A stretch of 64,000 nt of DNA, taken from the NCBI GenBank assembly GCA_964234715.1, contig OZ174277.1; one strand, given 5' to 3'. Positions 35,602-43,298 of this stretch are shown piece by piece. The position numbers and the translations under genes are program-made. The notes under the pieces were generated by a model, which saw nothing but the letters and a program-made list of their open reading frames with translations, was not told the DNA's origin and did not search any database. Numbering within the stretch: position 1 is the first letter of the stretch; each line of letters starts with the position of its first letter. This DNA is from Podarcis melisellensis. Lineage: Eukaryota.

Positions 35602-35814
35602 AAAGCGTGTTCTCCCTAAAAGAGAGCACGTGTTGCGGATGGGGCCAGGCAAAACCCAGGTTGCCAAGCATGATTAGATAGGAGGGGCTTGGAGCAGTTT
35701 GGATATTGGTGTTGCTGAGGATAAATTGATGTTGCCAATTTAGGGGTGGGATTAGTGGCTATTTAAGTAAGGTTCACAGCTTTCTCTTTCTCTTTTGCTG
35801 TGAACATCGGATCT
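35602..35814 (+). repeat. Split direct repeat A1 (213 bp)
   Basis: Identical by eye to 42141-42353. Confidence 0.95.
35705..35766 (+). promoter_or_regulatory. Putative Pol II promoter in repeat A
   Basis: ATTGG at 35705, GCCAAT at 35734, GGGGTGGG at 35743 and TATTTAA at 35760-35766, followed about 25 nt later by a pyrimidine-rich initiator-like tract. Confidence 0.6.
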
Positions 35815-36742
35815 TCAACACCGGAGTGGATCGGCAAAAGAGTTGGTTGTATAAACCCTTGTTCCTTTTCTTCCTCTTCCTTCGTTTCTATCTATTTCTT
35901 ATTTACTTATCCTCCCTGCTAATTCACCCTTCTATTTAATTCACCTCCTCTTATTTTCTAATTGTTGATTTGGGACTCTCATTGGGGGGGGGAGCCTCAC
36001 GGTCCCGGGGGGGGCTTACGGCCCGGTTCTCGGCCGAGCCACTAGACCCTGGACGGGAGTTTGGCCCCTTGCAGGCTGTTGTTTCATATTTTAACCTCCC
36101 CACCCCCCCCAACCTGCATCCGCAGCTGCGTGCGCTGGAGCCTGACGCGGCTGGCTTCGGCCCGGTCGGGCCTCCTCCGTTGCGGCTGCCCAGGCTTCTC
36201 CGCGGCTCACTCGGCCCGGCTGGGCCCGCGCCGCTTCCTCCCACCCCACCCCCTTCCCGCGACTGGGGCCTGTGAGCGCCAGGGGCCTCCTCGGGCCTAC
36301 TCGGCCCTGTCGGGCCTGCGTTGGCCCGGGGACCGGCAGCGGCCTGTGCGGCCCGGCCCCGCCCACCTCCGCTAGGCGCCGGGTGCTGGGATCGGTTGGC
36401 GCGGCCTAGCGGGGCCTGCCCTGCCGGGCCTTCCTTCCACGGCCGCCCCCCCCGTTTAGGAGCGGGCTCCAGGCGGGAGCCGCTGGGGCAGGTAACGACT
36501 TGCCTGGCGTCGGTGTTGGCGGCGCGCTCCTTCCGCGATCGCGGGCCGGGGTTTCGTGCGCTTGAGCCCTGCAGGCCTTTAGGCGATCTGGGGGCTCCCG
36601 GCCGCTCTTGAGCCCCTTCCTCCCCCTTCCCACCATCTCCGCCCCTGTGGTTTTGGGGGGGCGCCGGGTTGGGGACTGGTGGTGATCCTCCATTTTTCAG
36701 GTAATTTGGCGGGAGCGCCATTTTGTTGTGTTCAGGCCTGCA

Positions 36743-36841
36743 GCGCCATCTAGTGGGCCAGCTCCGTAACTGCAGCCGGCTGAGAGCTAGTGCTGGCCCA
36801 ACCTGAGTGGAGCCCTCTAGTGGCTACCTCTTGCATTGCAG
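36743..36841 (-). promoter_or_regulatory. Two tandem CTCF-like sites with upstream motif in the element leader
   Basis: The minus strand reads CTGCAGTT-acggagctggc-CCACTAGATGGCGC and CTGCAATG-caagaggtag-CCACTAGAGGGCTC. Confidence 0.65.
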
Positions 36842-37059
36842 TGTAATTTGTTACTACCCTTGCTATCTGTGGATTTGCTTTTCAGCTGATTAAGCTGCTT
36901 ACATTTTGAGGTCAAAGCCTTGGTCTAAATTGGGTCGTTACTTACCTACTGGTCAATTAATTGCTGAATATTAATTTTATTTGTATTGATTTGCTTAGTT
37001 CAATTTTATTGTTTCTTTGAATAATTTTAATTTTGTTTTATTTTACGCCAGTAGTAGGA

Positions 37060-38586
37060 ATGGCTCCAAAAAAGGCTACAAAGAAGTCTGGTCCGCCCCT
37101 CTCTGCGAAACGGCCCATAAGGGGCCCGTCTCAAGCTCTTCGCTCTCCTGCGCCTGGTCAGTCGTTGCAGCGCATTCAAACCATGGTCTCCAGTTTGGCC
37201 GGCGACCCAGTGGCATTGGCAAGGGTGGAGGCCGAGATGGATGGCCTGCTACACCGCGCCTCCACCCCTTCGACTTCATCAGCAAGGCTGGTTCCTCCTG
37301 CGGGTACCGCGTCCCCAGTGTTGTCATCCAGTGAAGACGAGAGAGAGGCATCATTTGCCGGGGGTGTTCTTCCAAATACGCAGTTGGCTCGGTCGCTGGT
37401 TTTACCTGCCCCGCAGGTCTCTGTGGCTAGGGGTCGTGGCCGGTCCAGGGCCGGGACCAGGAGAAGGGAATCAACCCGGGGACGTGCGGCGCGGGTTTCC
37501 CCCGCGCAGCCTCCAGTAGCAAGTAGGGCAGTGCCGGGGCATTCACAAGTTGTCTCTTTCCAGTCATCTCCAGGCGCTGGGCAGCAGGGCGATGTGTCTG
37601 AGTCTTCAGTAGAGGACAGCCTCCCCCCACCTCCAAAGACCTCTTCTGGAGGGCATCGCCGCCGCAAGAAGAGGTCCAAGAAGCGTGCCAAGCGGAGACG
37701 AAGGGACACCTCGTCGTCTTCTTCAGGTACATCTTCTCAGACTTCTAGTAGCGATGAGGAGGCGTCCTTGAAACTTTATTGGGGTTTTGGAGAGGCCTCG
37801 GGGCTCCCAAAGTGGGTTTGGGAGAGGAGGGCGAACTCCCACAGGGCCAGGTACGGGGCAGTACAAGAGTGTTTGGATGGAGTGTTGGTACCTGAGGTAA
37901 GGGTATCCACCAATTCAGCCAGGGATCTTATCCCAGGGTCACATCTGTCCGCCACATTACGGTCCAGGATCTTGAATGGGCGTTATGTGGATATTTTTAG
38001 CTTGGCCCCCCCTCTCGAGGGCCAGGAGCCCCTGGATAAGGGCTTGCCTCCAGCTAATAAACGTTCGATCTTAGCAAAAGCGGACAGGAATTTTGAGCGT
38101 TGGTTGGATAGTTTCCAGGTTTTTGCTGGAGTGGTTTCCGCGGCTTATCCCAGGAGGTCTTTGCACTTGTGGGTTTATCAGTCCATAGTCCGCTCGGCCT
38201 TTACTATGGCCGGGGAAGCTGCCGCTCTGTCCTACGATCAGAATTTTAGACGTAGAGCGGCCAAGATCCCTACTGCCCGCTGGGATCGAAAAGACTTGGA
38301 TGTCTGGACCACTTATGTGGCCCCTAGAATTGATAAGAAAGCCCCTGATACACAGAAGTTTAAGTCGGCCCCAGCGAGACCTGGCCGTAAGCTGGTCTGT
38401 TGGGACTTCAATAAAGGTACTTGTCCGCGGCAATCCTGCAAATATTTGCATGTGTGTGACAAGTGCTCAGGTAACCACGCAGCCTCCACATGTGCCGGCA
38501 GCCGGCGGCCATTTCGGAAAGGGGGAGGCTCACAGCAGCCTCCTAAAGCAGCTTCCCAAGCTCCTGCCACTGGAACAGGGAAGTAG
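37060..38586 (+). CDS. gag: Ngaro ORF1, Gag-like protein with a basic NLS-like tract and a C-terminal Cys/His zinc finger
   Basis: ATG at 37060 (MAPKKATKK), RRRKKRSKKRAKRRRR, YDQNFRRRAA, and CWDFNKGTCPRQSCKYLHVCDKCSGNHAASTC. Confidence 0.9.
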   Translation: MAPKKATKKSGPPLSAKRPIRGPSQALRSPAPGQSLQRIQTMVSSLAGDPVALARVEAEMDGLLHRASTPSTSSARLVPPAGTASPVLSSSEDEREASFAGGVLPNTQLARSLVLPAPQVSVARGRGRSRAGTRRRESTRGRAARVSPAQPPVASRAVPGHSQVVSFQSSPGAGQQGDVSESSVEDSLPPPPKTSSGGHRRRKKRSKKRAKRRRRDTSSSSSGTSSQTSSSDEEASLKLYWGFGEASGLPKWVWERRANSHRARYGAVQECLDGVLVPEVRVSTNSARDLIPGSHLSATLRSRILNGRYVDIFSLAPPLEGQEPLDKGLPPANKRSILAKADRNFERWLDSFQVFAGVVSAAYPRRSLHLWVYQSIVRSAFTMAGEAAALSYDQNFRRRAAKIPTARWDRKDLDVWTTYVAPRIDKKAPDTQKFKSAPARPGRKLVCWDFNKGTCPRQSCKYLHVCDKCSGNHAASTCAGSRRPFRKGGGSQQPPKAASQAPATGTGK

Positions 38587-40192
38587 TACCCTGTTCTCCT
38601 TGGCACATACCCCTGTGCGGTTACAGCCATTGCTATCATTGTTAGCTCTATACCCTGACAGTGCATCGGCATCTTATTTGCGTGATGGTTTTTCTTTTGG
38701 TTTCAGGATCCCAGTCGCCTCCACCCCTGTAGCTGGGAACCCTGTTAATCAAAAATCGGTTAAGGATATGCCAGAGGTGGCACGCAAGAAAATCGGGAAA
38801 GAATTGGCGTTGCAGCGTATGGCTGGGCCTTTTGCCACCCCCCCTTTTCCTAACTTGCATATTTCACCCTTGGGCATCGTTCCCAAAAAGGCTCCGGGGG
38901 AATTCCGCCTAATCCACAATTTATCTAGTCCTAGAGGCACGTCAGTAAATGACGTAATTCCCCCGGAGCTTTGTTCGGTGAAGTATGCGTCTCTTGATCA
39001 CGCGATCAAGATCATCAGGAAGTTCGGGCGGGGTGCCCTGCTAGCCAAATGCGACATTGAGTCGGCGTTTCGGCTGCTTCCTATTCATCCCGATGACTTT
39101 TGGCTGCTAGGTTTCCAATTTGAAGGGGGTTATTATTTTGACAAAGCTATGCCCATGGGCTGCTCGGTGGCCTGTGCGGCCTTTGAGTGTTTTAGTTCAT
39201 TTTTGGAATGGGCTTTGCGTGAAAAAACCGGTTTGGGCGGGGTTACGCATTACCTGGATGATTTTTTGATGACTTCGGCAAAAAATACGGGTAATTGTGA
39301 GGTGCTTTTGCGTGCCTTTGCCTCCCTGGCGGAGTACCTGGGCGTTCCGTTGGCGGCGGAGAAGACCGAGGGCCCTTCTACGCAGCTGACTTATTTAGGT
39401 ATCTTGCTGGATACGGTGGCCCAAACTTCCAGTTTGCCGCCTGAGAAGATTACCACTTTAAAGAGGGTCATCAGTGAACTCCTTCCCTTAAAGAAGGTGA
39501 CGTTGCGGCAACTCCAGTCGCTGCTGGGTCACTTGAATTTCGCTTGCAGGGTGGTCGCTCCGGGGAGGCCATTCTGCTCACGTTTGGCCAGACTGACATC
39601 GGGGCTGCGGGCCCCGCAGCACAGAGTGCGCCTTCCTCAACAAGTGAGGGCTGACCTTAACATGTGGTTGGAATTCCTAGAGGAATTCAATGGTGTTTCC
39701 TTGTGGCAGGACATTTTGAACCTCCATAATGATTTTCAGGTGCACTCTGATGCGGCGGGGTCATTGGGGTTTGGTCTCTACTGGGATGGTAGGTGGTGCG
39801 CGGAACACTGGCCTCCGGATTGGCGTGGAGAAGCAATAACTCGAGATTTAACGTTCCTTGAGTTCTTCCCCATTGTGGTGGCCGTGCACTTGTGGGTGGA
39901 GCATTTCAGAGACCACCGGGTTTGCTTTTGGTCTGATAACCAGGCGGTGGTGAAGGTACTGGCTAAGCAGTCTTCACGATCTCCGCGAGTATCAGCTTTG
40001 CTGCGGGCGTTTGTATTACACTGTTTACGCTTTAACATAGTGTTTTCTGCCCGCTTTATTCCGGGCATATCTAATGAGATTGCTGATGCTCTGTCCCGTT
40101 TTCAGATGGAGCGGTTCAGGTCCCTGGCGCCACTGGCTCGAGACCGTCCGGAAATTTTCCCGGATCATCTCTGGAACCTTGGCAGCACTTAG
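38300..40192 (+). CDS. pol: Ngaro reverse transcriptase / RNase H
   Basis: 630-aa ORF overlapping gag. RT motifs FRLIHNLS, KCDIESAFRLLP, MPMG, YLDDF, YLGILLD. RNase H motifs HSDAAG, LEFFP, WSDNQ, NEIADALSR. Confidence 0.95.
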   Translation: MSGPLMWPLELIRKPLIHRSLSRPQRDLAVSWSVGTSIKVLVRGNPANICMCVTSAQVTTQPPHVPAAGGHFGKGEAHSSLLKQLPKLLPLEQGSSTLFSLAHTPVRLQPLLSLLALYPDSASASYLRDGFSFGFRIPVASTPVAGNPVNQKSVKDMPEVARKKIGKELALQRMAGPFATPPFPNLHISPLGIVPKKAPGEFRLIHNLSSPRGTSVNDVIPPELCSVKYASLDHAIKIIRKFGRGALLAKCDIESAFRLLPIHPDDFWLLGFQFEGGYYFDKAMPMGCSVACAAFECFSSFLEWALREKTGLGGVTHYLDDFLMTSAKNTGNCEVLLRAFASLAEYLGVPLAAEKTEGPSTQLTYLGILLDTVAQTSSLPPEKITTLKRVISELLPLKKVTLRQLQSLLGHLNFACRVVAPGRPFCSRLARLTSGLRAPQHRVRLPQQVRADLNMWLEFLEEFNGVSLWQDILNLHNDFQVHSDAAGSLGFGLYWDGRWCAEHWPPDWRGEAITRDLTFLEFFPIVVAVHLWVEHFRDHRVCFWSDNQAVVKVLAKQSSRSPRVSALLRAFVLHCLRFNIVFSARFIPGISNEIADALSRFQMERFRSLAPLARDRPEIFPDHLWNLGST

Positions 40193-41079
40193 TTTTTCAG
40201 GGAGTAGCTGCTTCTGTCGCCCCCTCTACTTTGAGGTCCTATGAGAAAGCATGGGCCGATTTTTTGCTATTTAATGGACAGTCAGTAGCTGGGGAGGTTC
40301 TTGCCCCCCATTCTACATCCCAGGTGCTCAGGTATTTAGCACATTTATTCCAGAAGCGCAGGGCAGTCAGGACGCTGCGCCTTCACTCAGCAGCGATCTC
40401 CTTTTTTAGTAAGGCATTCTTCAACAAAGACCCGTGTGGGAAGTTTGTGGTGCGCAAGGCTTTGGAAGGATGGGGGCGATTGCTCCCCTCCGGGCTTCCC
40501 CCCCGACGACCCATCACTTTTGAACTTTTGGCAAAAATGCGCTGTAAATTGCGCAGCATCTGTTGGTCGTCTTTTGAGGCGCGGCTATTTTCCGCAGCCT
40601 TTTCATTAGCCTTTTTTGGGGCTCTGAGGGTAGGTGAGGTGGTACTGGAGCCTAAGCGGGATGGTGGTTCCAGGGGATTATTGCTACAGGACGTGAGTTT
40701 GTCTCCGTCTGAGCTTCAGGTTAACGTCAGAAATTCGAAGACAGACCAATTGGGCAGGGGTGCCATTATTCGGCTCCCGGCGTCGGGGGAACGTGGCCCT
40801 TGCCCTGTAAAAGACCTCACAAAATATTTGGCCTTGCGTCCAGCAGGTGAAGGACCCCTGTTTATTCATGAGAACGGGCGCCCTCTGGGGAGGCATCAGT
40901 TCGCCAGAGTGTTGCGTAAAGCTCTTGCAGCTTGCGGCCAGGTGGCATCGGAGTTTGCACCTCATTCCTTTCGGATTGGTGCTGCAACGACGGCTGCCCA
41001 TTGGGGTTTGTCGGTGCATGGGATTAAAGATTTGGGTCGTTGGAAATCGGGGGCATTCAAAGTATATGTGCGCACATGA
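40087..41079 (+). CDS. Tyrosine recombinase (frame open from 40087; first in-frame ATG only at 40537)
   Basis: Full catalytic set: R (ALRVGE), K (SKTDQ), HxxR (HSFR), W (GRWKS), Y (KVYVR). Confidence 0.95.
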   Translation, partial: CSVPFSDGAVQVPGATGSRPSGNFPGSSLEPWQHLVFQGVAASVAPSTLRSYEKAWADFLLFNGQSVAGEVLAPHSTSQVLRYLAHLFQKRRAVRTLRLHSAAISFFSKAFFNKDPCGKFVVRKALEGWGRLLPSGLPPRRPITFELLAKMRCKLRSICWSSFEARLFSAAFSLAFFGALRVGEVVLEPKRDGGSRGLLLQDVSLSPSELQVNVRNSKTDQLGRGAIIRLPASGERGPCPVKDLTKYLALRPAGEGPLFIHENGRPLGRHQFARVLRKALAACGQVASEFAPHSFRIGAATTAAHWGLSVHGIKDLGRWKSGAFKVYVRT

Positions 41080-41692
41080 TATGGATATGTACTTACATTT
41101 TTTGTGTTTAACCCTAGGTTGGGCTCCTATCCGTATTTGGATAGTAGGCCACAGTATTGTACATTGGGCTGCCGTCAGAGCTCGTCAGTCTGGACTGGGC
41201 GAGGGCCTATGCTTCCCACAACACGTTCAGGTTTCCTGGATCTCCAGACGGGGGATGCTGTGGAGTGAATTCTTACCACTCATGCGAAGGCGCGTTTTCC
41301 AGGATGGTCCTCCTTCAGCGATTGTGGTGCAGCTCGGGGAGAACGATATCGTATCTTCTTCCTGCTTTGGGCTGCGTGCTGCCATTTTACAGGACTTGGG
41401 GGAATTGGCGGCCATGGTGCCTTTTACTACACTGATTTGGTCACAGTTGCTTCAACGCCGCACGTGGCGTGGTAGTCCCTGCCCAGCAGCCACTGAACGG
41501 GTTAGGAAGCGGGTTAATTCCGCAGCAAGCAAGTTGGTGGTGGGCCTGGGCGGATTGGTGATACCTCACCCTCTTATTTCATTCAAGGCTGCTGAACTAT
41601 ACAGAGATGACGGGGTTCATCTCTCTTCAGTGGGGAATGATTTGTGGTTGGATTCAGTGGTGTCCAAGTTGAGGGTCTGGTTTGCTTTGTGA
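40847..41692 (+). CDS. SGNH/GDSL-family hydrolase (domain ~41118-41692)
   Basis: Block I IVGHS, block II RRG, block III LGEND and block V DGVH. Hydrolase ORFs are known from some vertebrate Ngaro elements. Confidence 0.9.
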   Translation: MKDPCLFMRTGALWGGISSPECCVKLLQLAARWHRSLHLIPFGLVLQRRLPIGVCRCMGLKIWVVGNRGHSKYMCAHDMDMYLHFLCLTLGWAPIRIWIVGHSIVHWAAVRARQSGLGEGLCFPQHVQVSWISRRGMLWSEFLPLMRRRVFQDGPPSAIVVQLGENDIVSSSCFGLRAAILQDLGELAAMVPFTTLIWSQLLQRRTWRGSPCPAATERVRKRVNSAASKLVVGLGGLVIPHPLISFKAAELYRDDGVHLSSVGNDLWLDSVVSKLRVWFAL

Positions 41693-41720
41693 GTGGTTGG
41701 CGGCGAGCGTAGGGCTCGAG

Positions 41721-42140
41721 TGGCGGTTAGGCATTGGTTAAAATTGCTTGGTGGAGGGGTATGGATAGGCTGGGCCTGCCCCTCCAATGCTGCTGCTGCA
41801 CGGGTATTCCGTTAAAGGAATTCTGAAGCTTACCATCCCCTTCGTCCAAACCCTGACGGCAGGGTGCGGGCCGTGTAAGCTTCAAGGAGCATGCGGGGTG
41901 TAGCTGAGGGTCTGATTCACAGCTCTGGCTGGCCCTGATCTTGTTCCTCCGAACTGGCTAAGGAGTCAGTGCTGTCCCCCAAGGCGGGAGGGGACAGCTA
42001 GTCATAACCAATGCCTAAGCAACCATTCACAATTTGTATGATAATAAAGTTGTGGCCAAAATTATGCCAAAAACCTTAAACAAAAATCACGTGTCATGTG
42101 TGAGTTATTGGGGTAGGGGTTTTGAAGGACCTCGTCACGC
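41721..42140 (+). repeat. Split direct repeat B1 (420 bp), AATAAA at 42043-42048
   Basis: Identical by eye to 42517-42936. Confidence 0.95.
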
Positions 42141-42353
42141 AAAGCGTGTTCTCCCTAAAAGAGAGCACGTGTTGCGGATGGGGCCAGGCAAAACCCAGGT
42201 TGCCAAGCATGATTAGATAGGAGGGGCTTGGAGCAGTTTGGATATTGGTGTTGCTGAGGATAAATTGATGTTGCCAATTTAGGGGTGGGATTAGTGGCTA
42301 TTTAAGTAAGGTTCACAGCTTTCTCTTTCTCTTTTGCTGTGAACATCGGATCT
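42141..42353 (+). repeat. Split direct repeat A2
   Basis: Copy of 35602-35814. Confidence 0.95.
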
Positions 42354-42516
42354 CCCGCCCGCCCTCCCTTGTTGGGCTTGCGCTTGACCTTGCTTTGCCT
42401 GTCATGGGGTCGTCCGCCTTGGTGCGGGGGCCCAGTAGGAATTTACCAATTGGCTGATTAGTGTGTGCCTTTTGGGTTTTGCCTACTGCTTAGCAAATCG
42501 TCACAACTTGTAAGGT

Positions 42517-42936
42517 TGGCGGTTAGGCATTGGTTAAAATTGCTTGGTGGAGGGGTATGGATAGGCTGGGCCTGCCCCTCCAATGCTGCTGCTGCACGGG
42601 TATTCCGTTAAAGGAATTCTGAAGCTTACCATCCCCTTCGTCCAAACCCTGACGGCAGGGTGCGGGCCGTGTAAGCTTCAAGGAGCATGCGGGGTGTAGC
42701 TGAGGGTCTGATTCACAGCTCTGGCTGGCCCTGATCTTGTTCCTCCGAACTGGCTAAGGAGTCAGTGCTGTCCCCCAAGGCGGGAGGGGACAGCTAGTCA
42801 TAACCAATGCCTAAGCAACCATTCACAATTTGTATGATAATAAAGTTGTGGCCAAAATTATGCCAAAAACCTTAAACAAAAATCACGTGTCATGTGTGAG
42901 TTATTGGGGTAGGGGTTTTGAAGGACCTCGTCACGC
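42517..42936 (+). repeat. Split direct repeat B2
   Basis: Copy of 41721-42140. Confidence 0.95.
42839..42844 (+). terminator. Polyadenylation signal of the full-length element transcript
   Basis: AATAAAGTTGTGGCC is conserved in all three Ngaro-like units, with a GT-rich tract downstream. Confidence 0.7.
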
Positions 42937-43298
42937 AAAATAACAGGCTGAAAAACTCTGGGGGTTTATACCACTTTAAAGAGCTGGCCCATGAGAAATT
43001 ATACATAAAACTGGGGGTGGGGGAGGGGGAGATACCAATAATAAATAAGACCCACAGTGATGAACAGGATTCAGCGAGTGGCCAGAGAGCTCCCAAAATA
43101 ACCCTAACTGGACCAGAAAACAAAGGCCACAATATCTGACTGCCAGTGGCACTGATATGAACATCAAGATGCCCAGATGGATGGCAGTTTTCTATGTGGT
43201 TATATCTGCAACAATCTTCACATGTTTTACTTAGAAATGGAGATTAAAGTTTGAAAGCCAAGAGGTTCTATTTGTGTGGGGCAGGGTAGGTCCTTGTC

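Follow-up and report, generated by a model that had tools for sequence, protein, structure and literature searches.

Predicted splicing of a shared gag leader exon onto the recombinase and esterase frames of a Ngaro retrotransposon from Podarcis melisellensis

Ngaro retrotransposons that carry an open reading frame (ORF) for a hydrolase are known from amphibians (PMC9210276). Those with a fourth ORF for an SGNH hydrolase, such as DIRS-53_XT of Xenopus, resemble the element analyzed here in their A1, B1, A2 and B2 repeats, in the order of gag, reverse transcriptase/RNase H (RT/RNase H), tyrosine recombinase (YR) and SGNH hydrolase, and in the overlap of their frames. Our element lies in a stretch of 64,000 nucleotides (nt) from the lizard Podarcis melisellensis (assembly GCA_964234715.1, contig OZ174277.1), the whole of which is referred to as the window. 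Published accounts of Ngaro describe the overlapping frames and suggest frameshifting; specifically, -1 frameshifting within the RT/YR overlap was proposed for the recombinase by Poulter and Butler (2015), as quoted in PMC13003380. Translation of the overlapping, ATG-less frames of tyrosine-recombinase retrotransposons in general has so far been put down to 'probably frameshifting'. The family in the window differs from these accounts by a splice donor within gag and by predicted spliced fusion products, and the comparison of its sequence with that of related copies makes it, in our judgment, highly probable that the Ngaro recombinase and esterase are each made by splicing onto the first 222 codons of gag. 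No report of splicing, of a gag donor or of spliced fusion products for Ngaro or DIRS elements was found in the full-text literature searched, a scope outside which Goodwin and Poulter (2004) and Poulter and Butler (2015) fall.

The element occupies positions 35602-42939 on the plus strand (7338 nt) and is an intact, very recent Ngaro retrotransposon of the DIRS order. Its split direct repeats are ordered A1 ... B1 A2 B2, with A1 (35602-35814) at the 5' end and B1 (41721-42143), A2 (42141-42353) and B2 (42517-42939) at the 3' end; A1 and A2 are 100% identical over 213 nt, as are B1 and B2 over 423 nt. The element contains four intact frames, all on the plus strand, namely the gag ORF (37060-38586, 508 aa), the open RT/RNase H frame (38189-40192; RVT_1, E 2.7e-12), which is in frame +1 relative to gag, the open YR frame (40087-41079), shifted by -1 from that of RT and overlapping it by 106 nt (40087-40192), and, as the fourth ORF after YR, the open frame of an SGNH-type esterase (40811-41692). 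A zinc finger of the CCCH type lies close to the C-terminal end of Gag; its match to zf-CCCH_10 (E 3e-5) falls short of the Pfam cut-off. As in other Ngaro elements, RT/RNase H is followed by a tyrosine recombinase in place of a DDE integrase, a methyltransferase domain gave no match, and, as in some members, a hydrolase ORF comes after the recombinase. The nearest proteins to those encoded by the element are from Podarcis, Zootoca and Lacerta.

The proposed shared first coding exon, termed Gag-N (37060-37726, +), comprises 222 codons plus one base and ends with a basic tract (14 Lys or Arg in 20 residues) and a serine run, both directly 5' of a phase-1 donor, CAG/GTACAT (37724-37732, +), at which the exon would end with position 37726. 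The acceptor for the recombinase (40082-40105, +) is placed on the RNase H codons for the motif ADALSRFQ and consists of a tract with 15 pyrimidines in 20 positions, followed by CAG; its AG ends at 40105 within the last codon of this motif, and the exon would start at 40106 on codon position 2, again in phase 1. The acceptor for the esterase (41090-41117, +) is formed by a pyrimidine tract and TAG within the 38 nt of spacer that follow the stop codon of YR; it is likewise in phase 1, and its AG ends at 41117, 29 nt 5' of the GHS codon of the esterase. With these sites, unspliced RNA would give rise to the full Gag, and the weak gag donor after 37726 would be joined alternatively to an exon starting at 40106 or to one starting at 41118, yielding two subgenomic mRNAs that would both be translated from the gag ATG. 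Their predicted products would carry Gag residues 1-222, including the strongly basic tract, in frame with either YR (exon 40106-41079, +; 546 aa by length arithmetic) or the SGNH esterase (exon 41118-41692, +; 413 aa, the same length as the nearest models, P0121 and P0122). A weak donor would presumably leave most of the RNA unspliced for Gag synthesis and replication, and the shared N-terminal part might serve a putative targeting function through nuclear import, RNA binding or co-assembly with Gag. We infer that the copy in the window is itself transcribed and spliced.

From the sequence of the window alone, these sites are no more than what chance would provide, and they gain significance only through comparison with other copies. 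When they were ranked by a rough position matrix, which is suited for ranking only, the two acceptors took the fifth and sixth places among 236 AGs. The comparison included nine loci, i.e. the window, five other lacertid copies belonging to several families, and copies from a gecko, Xenopus and Mytilus, with conservation being measured on the DNA and independently of any gene model. A phase-1 GT within a GGT glycine codon follows the N-terminal part of gag in all nine loci. The acceptor on the ADALSRFQ codons is also retained in phase 1 in nine out of nine, and its synonymous positions are confined to pyrimidines, with Ser always encoded by TCY, Arg or Cys always by YGT, and Gln always by CAG. 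The esterase acceptor is found in phase 1 in all eight loci that have an intact esterase, one further copy being broken at this point. In the seven loci in which the distance was measured (all but Mytilus), a pyrimidine-rich tract and a phase-1 YAG are located 26-35 nt 5' of GHS, and the Mytilus locus (L007) has a phase-1 AG acceptor before the esterase with a weaker tract. The protein sequence encoded by the esterase frame 5' of its acceptor is not conserved, and in Xenopus this frame contains a stop codon 19 nt before the acceptor. A donor 3' of the gag ATG, acceptors before the downstream genes and a matching phase, the arrangement that characterizes a retrovirus-like subgenomic spliced mRNA with an in-frame gag leader, were found together at nine loci. 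Relative to three distant lacertid families, the DNA identity of Gag-N amounts to 19-34%. In the same comparison, a 60-nt segment around the YR acceptor reaches 77% and ranks second in conservation among such segments of the element.

An earlier, sequence-only reading of this DNA had picked out the acceptors ending at 40105, on ADALSRFQ, and at 41117, together with GTs after 37726, past the basic tract, and after 38470, in the zinc finger, all in phase 1, and its coordinates and phases are correct throughout. It had also staked its proposal in advance on the conservation of the acceptors and their phase, which the nine-locus comparison bears out. Its suggestion of alternative splicing from a gag donor holds up, by conservation and by gene models, for the donor after 37726 and both acceptors but fails for the second donor candidate, CAG/GTAACC (38468-38476, +). 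This candidate was rejected and is judged a chance site: its Gly codon is GGG, GGA or GGC in five of the eight loci that have the motif, among them L003, the closest relative, and no gene model makes use of it.

The same junctions recur in public gene models. RefSeq models were collected by separate searches with the exons of YR and of the esterase, and exon structures at nine loci were solved exactly from protein and DNA. In many of the RefSeq models the homology begins exactly at one of the two acceptors and is preceded by an N-terminal extension, and a homologous Gag-N exon is used in the NCBI models P0023, P0007, P0153 and P0122. Model P0023 of Podarcis muralis (L001) joins gag codons 1-222 to YR at the homologous CAG/GT and TTTCAG/ sites, and P0122 from another P. 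muralis copy (L003), which shares 80.6% DNA identity with the window element, joins Gag-N to the esterase in a protein of 413 aa. At a Zootoca gene (LOC118082278, L002), isoform X1 combines Gag-N with YR, and isoform X2 combines the same first exon and donor with the esterase. Likewise, a phase-1 gag donor is joined to the ADALSRFQ acceptor in model P0109 of Xenopus tropicalis (L006), and the same arrangement is seen in model P0046 of the gecko Paroedura (L008). The Mytilus trossulus gene LOC134707625 has four recorded products of 360, 634, 404 and 284 aa that start from one ATG, and these four lengths are exactly reproduced by either no splicing or by one donor combined with three AG acceptors before RT, YR and the esterase. 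Among the lacertid models, about 20 read the basic tract, the serines and then Gly followed by the esterase, and eight read the basic tract and then Asp-Gly followed by YR; the junction codons in the window would encode the same residues. Taken together, models that join exactly these sites come from P. muralis, P. raffonei, P. lilfordi, Zootoca, Paroedura, Xenopus and Mytilus, and the P. lilfordi models, which contain the identical donor-acceptor pair, were built by a different annotation pipeline that used RNA-seq and Iso-Seq as well as P. muralis proteins. For a 360-aa product from Xenopus, brute-force exon fitting gave no unique solution.

Some copies show additional or irregular structures. 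The P. muralis copy behind P0023 is interrupted (L001, 9700-15750), with the end of YR and the esterase lying in pieces about 4 kb further on. In P. lilfordi (OX395132.1; L009, 3001-22220), an intronic Ngaro copy contributes two exons to the host-gene model CAI5779521.1, in which the gag donor and the esterase acceptor are those described above and a donor inside the esterase then leads on into host exons. In the P. muralis models P0062 and P0135, part of the recombinase is spliced to the esterase acceptor. A phase-1 GT corresponding to their donor is found in the YR frame of the window at 40759/40760, after the motif KTDQ..G, and this GT may represent a further or cryptic splice site.

Several observations weigh against splicing as the source of both enzymes. 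The donor after 37726 is weak and, by the crude matrix, takes only the seventh place among the 94 GTs in gag, behind the rejected site after 38470 in third place. None of the sequencing runs found to contain this stretch is an RNA run: there are three, all derived from a single sample, which are stored as contigs and have the character of DNA. Neither the joint from 37726 to 40106 nor that from 37726 to 41118 is among the 15 of 30 joints listed in the DNA contigs of these runs. The esterase frame of the window has ATGs at 41066, 41081 and 41087, 31-52 nt before the acceptor, exactly as the sequence-only reading had cautioned in pointing to in-frame ATGs near 41066-41090. Moreover, a potential slippery heptamer, T_TTC_CCG or T_TTC_CCA, is present in four lacertid loci including the window. 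The gene models, finally, are predictions, some of which may have spread between species through protein alignments (the proteome of P. muralis was an input to the annotation of P. lilfordi), and other copies have differing models, e.g. fusions of RT with YR or of YR with the esterase. Cluster look-ups returned no fused form on a short contig, and the proteins found in Logan and ENA were all unspliced single ORFs.

As one alternative, the junctions might be regarded as artefacts of gene prediction, in which consensus-like sites without a role, or with a cryptic role only for copies inside host genes, were propagated by protein homology. That the sites by themselves are not outstanding, that annotation pipelines rely on cross-species protein alignments, that some models at other copies are mutually inconsistent and that one model is a chimera of host and element would all agree with such an origin. 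However, the sites are conserved at the level of the DNA, independently of any model, from mussel to lizard and in places where the neighboring sequence is saturated. Furthermore, the four Mytilus products have a common ATG and a common donor, and in a Zootoca copy (L004) gag and RT form one continuous frame, for which a predictor that purely maximizes ORFs would not choose the spliced model that is recorded. We therefore consider an annotation artefact very unlikely.

A second alternative would dispense with splicing altogether. The recombinase, whose frame is indeed the -1 frame relative to RT, would be produced by frameshifting from RT/RNase H within the 106-nt overlap, in agreement with the earlier proposal cited above, and the esterase would be translated from its own ATG at 41066, 41081 or 41087. 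The heptamer T_TTC_CCG is located in the RT frame within the overlap (40156-40162), where it encodes a conserved Phe-Pro, with counterparts in three other lacertid loci, and in-frame ATGs ahead of the esterase also occur in L003 and L004. However, efficient eukaryotic slippery heptamers carry A or U in the second triplet, and T_TTC_CCG is not of this type. No slippery heptamer was found in the RT/YR overlap of L002, L005 and the Xenopus copy L006, and hence a conserved heptamer of the form X_XXY_YYZ in the zero frame of the overlap, the hallmark of -1 frameshifting, is missing among these loci. In three of six esterase frames there is no ATG between the upstream stop codon and the acceptor, and the next ATG is found only at or beyond the catalytic serine of GHS. 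Moreover, an exclusively unspliced RNA would leave unexplained why gag retains a phase-1 donor, why synonymous positions at the YR acceptor are confined to pyrimidines and why so many gene models have these junctions. Expression of both enzymes without splicing thus appears very improbable to us, although frameshifting may operate as a minor route.

The distribution of start codons in the YR frame bears on a third possibility, in which Gag-N fusions produced by splicing would be accompanied by some recombinase or esterase made from unspliced RNA via frameshifting, reinitiation or internal initiation. In the window, the YR frame contains a single in-frame ATG at 40537, as the sequence-only reading had put it exactly, which lies 3' of the N-terminal SAM-like domain; a stop codon interrupts the frame 22 nt 5' of the acceptor, and the 431 nt that follow the acceptor are free of ATGs. 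At each of the seven tabulated loci, a YR-frame stop precedes the acceptor by 22-34 nt with no ATG between the two. ATGs near the start of YR do occur in L002, L005 and L006, single-exon YR models or ORFs of 293-305 aa with a Met near the YR start are found in the gecko Eublepharis, in Lacerta agilis and on other public contigs, and the esterase of the window has ATGs of its own. In contrast, the first ATG in the YR frame is reached only about 430 nt after the acceptor in the window, L003 and L001, and no tested result requires a second route. The combined use of spliced and unspliced RNA for these enzymes is, in our estimate, extremely unlikely.

Splicing of a shared gag leader exon to alternative acceptors would account for the missing start codons of the YR and esterase frames, for the identical phase of all three junctions, and for a degree of DNA conservation at the end of RNase H that is among the highest in the element. 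For metazoan Ngaro elements as a whole, we see an even chance that one phase-1 gag donor is combined with separate acceptors before RT/RNase H, YR and the esterase, so that every enzyme would be a Gag-N fusion and the Gag-N module would bring the enzymes to the particle or the nucleus. If this applied to all metazoan Ngaro, it would replace the frameshifting model of the reviews, and the strategy would predate the split between molluscs and vertebrates. A conserved phase-1 acceptor for RT was not found in the window family; all candidates are weak, and the closest relative shares only two of them. TTACAG at 38626 (phase 0) was rejected as an RT acceptor, as it is not kept in L002 or L004. The RT frame of the window has ATGs at 38300, 38315 and 38450. 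Among the gene models, acceptors that join Gag-N to RT are seen in Mytilus (L007, 4008) and in one Zootoca family (L004, 6703), the latter being the copy in which gag and RT form one continuous frame and the model is nevertheless spliced, and one P. muralis model bridges gag to RT by a 184-nt intron (L005, 6249-6434).

The proposed strategy has parallels outside this group of elements. In avian sarcoma/leukosis virus, the 5' donor for the env mRNA lies inside gag, 3' of the gag ATG, and translation proceeds from this ATG in frame into the downstream gene. The Ngaro arrangement is alike in having the donor within gag, a spliced mRNA that would start at the gag ATG and a downstream gene in frame. 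However, the virus shares only about six gag codons with one downstream gene, whereas in Ngaro, which is not a retrovirus, 82-257 gag codons would be shared across the loci and two enzymes, in the mussel three, would be served. The subgenomic mRNAs for foamy virus Pol and for the Gag of copia and BARE are examples in which the ratio of proteins is set by splicing rather than frameshifting. Foamy virus Pol lacks a Gag part, however, and the spliced RNA of copia and BARE encodes Gag, while the spliced RNAs of Ngaro would encode enzymes.

The identity of the two enzymes was examined at the level of conserved residues and domain matches. In the esterase frame of the window, the SGNH blocks are GHS at 41147, GEND at 41336 and DGVH at 41609. 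The catalytic Ser of block I, the oxyanion Gly and Asn, and the Asp-x-x-His of block V that define SGNH/GDSL enzymes are all found. An alignment of 16 sequences shows no variation at Ser12, Asn75 and Asp76 and at least 90% retention of Asp164 and His167. The Pfam match of the single esterase sequence is weak (E 0.31). With a profile, the best solved relative was 4c1b, the ORF1p esterase of ZfL2-1, at E 9.6e-8 over nearly the whole domain, which lends substance to the analogy with ORF1p esterases of long interspersed elements (LINEs) drawn in the sequence-only reading. In ZfL2-1 ORF1p, an SGNH-type esterase is part of the protein that packages the nucleic acid of the element, and a membrane-targeting role has been proposed for it (PMC3905857). 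The two systems differ in that the esterase is a fixed domain of ORF1p in ZfL2-1, whereas the Ngaro esterase would be linked to Gag-N instead of the full Gag, and this solely through a spliced mRNA. YR was matched by the Pfam family Phage_integrase at E 1.9e-5 (25 bits, just under the 27.1-bit cut-off); for the YR exon, this family and the N-terminal SAM-like domain gave E 2.6e-5 and 2e-4, the latter at residues 36-106. The ALR and HSFR motifs and the C-terminal Tyr of tyrosine recombinases were all found, and the exon has hundreds of XerD-like homologues. The N-terminal exon of gag, by comparison, yielded 13 matches in a library of 1.8 billion proteins, and because all of these were lacertid models or noise, Gag-N is lineage-restricted.

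The proposed structure provides annotators with a rule to recognize intact copies and accounts for many entries in vertebrate and mollusc RefSeq that are named 'uncharacterized protein' or 'XerD homolog'. It also makes two ideas testable, namely that Gag-N functions as an enzyme-targeting module and that a Gag-tethered esterase acts in the role proposed for the ORF1p esterases of LINEs.

Two further features of the element were observed. The 1.2-kb leader between A1 and the gag ATG contains a segment (36000-36500) with a G+C content of 75%, in which either strand has long spurious ORFs. Over the B1 and A2 repeats (41666-42400), the summed depth in the contigs of the three DNA runs was 100-300 times that of the coding interior, and over the RNase H end and the YR acceptor (39947-40328) it was about 20 times that of the flanks. 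Among genomic copies, the B1/A2 pieces and those of the RNase H end accordingly far exceed the remainder of the element either in abundance or in conservation.

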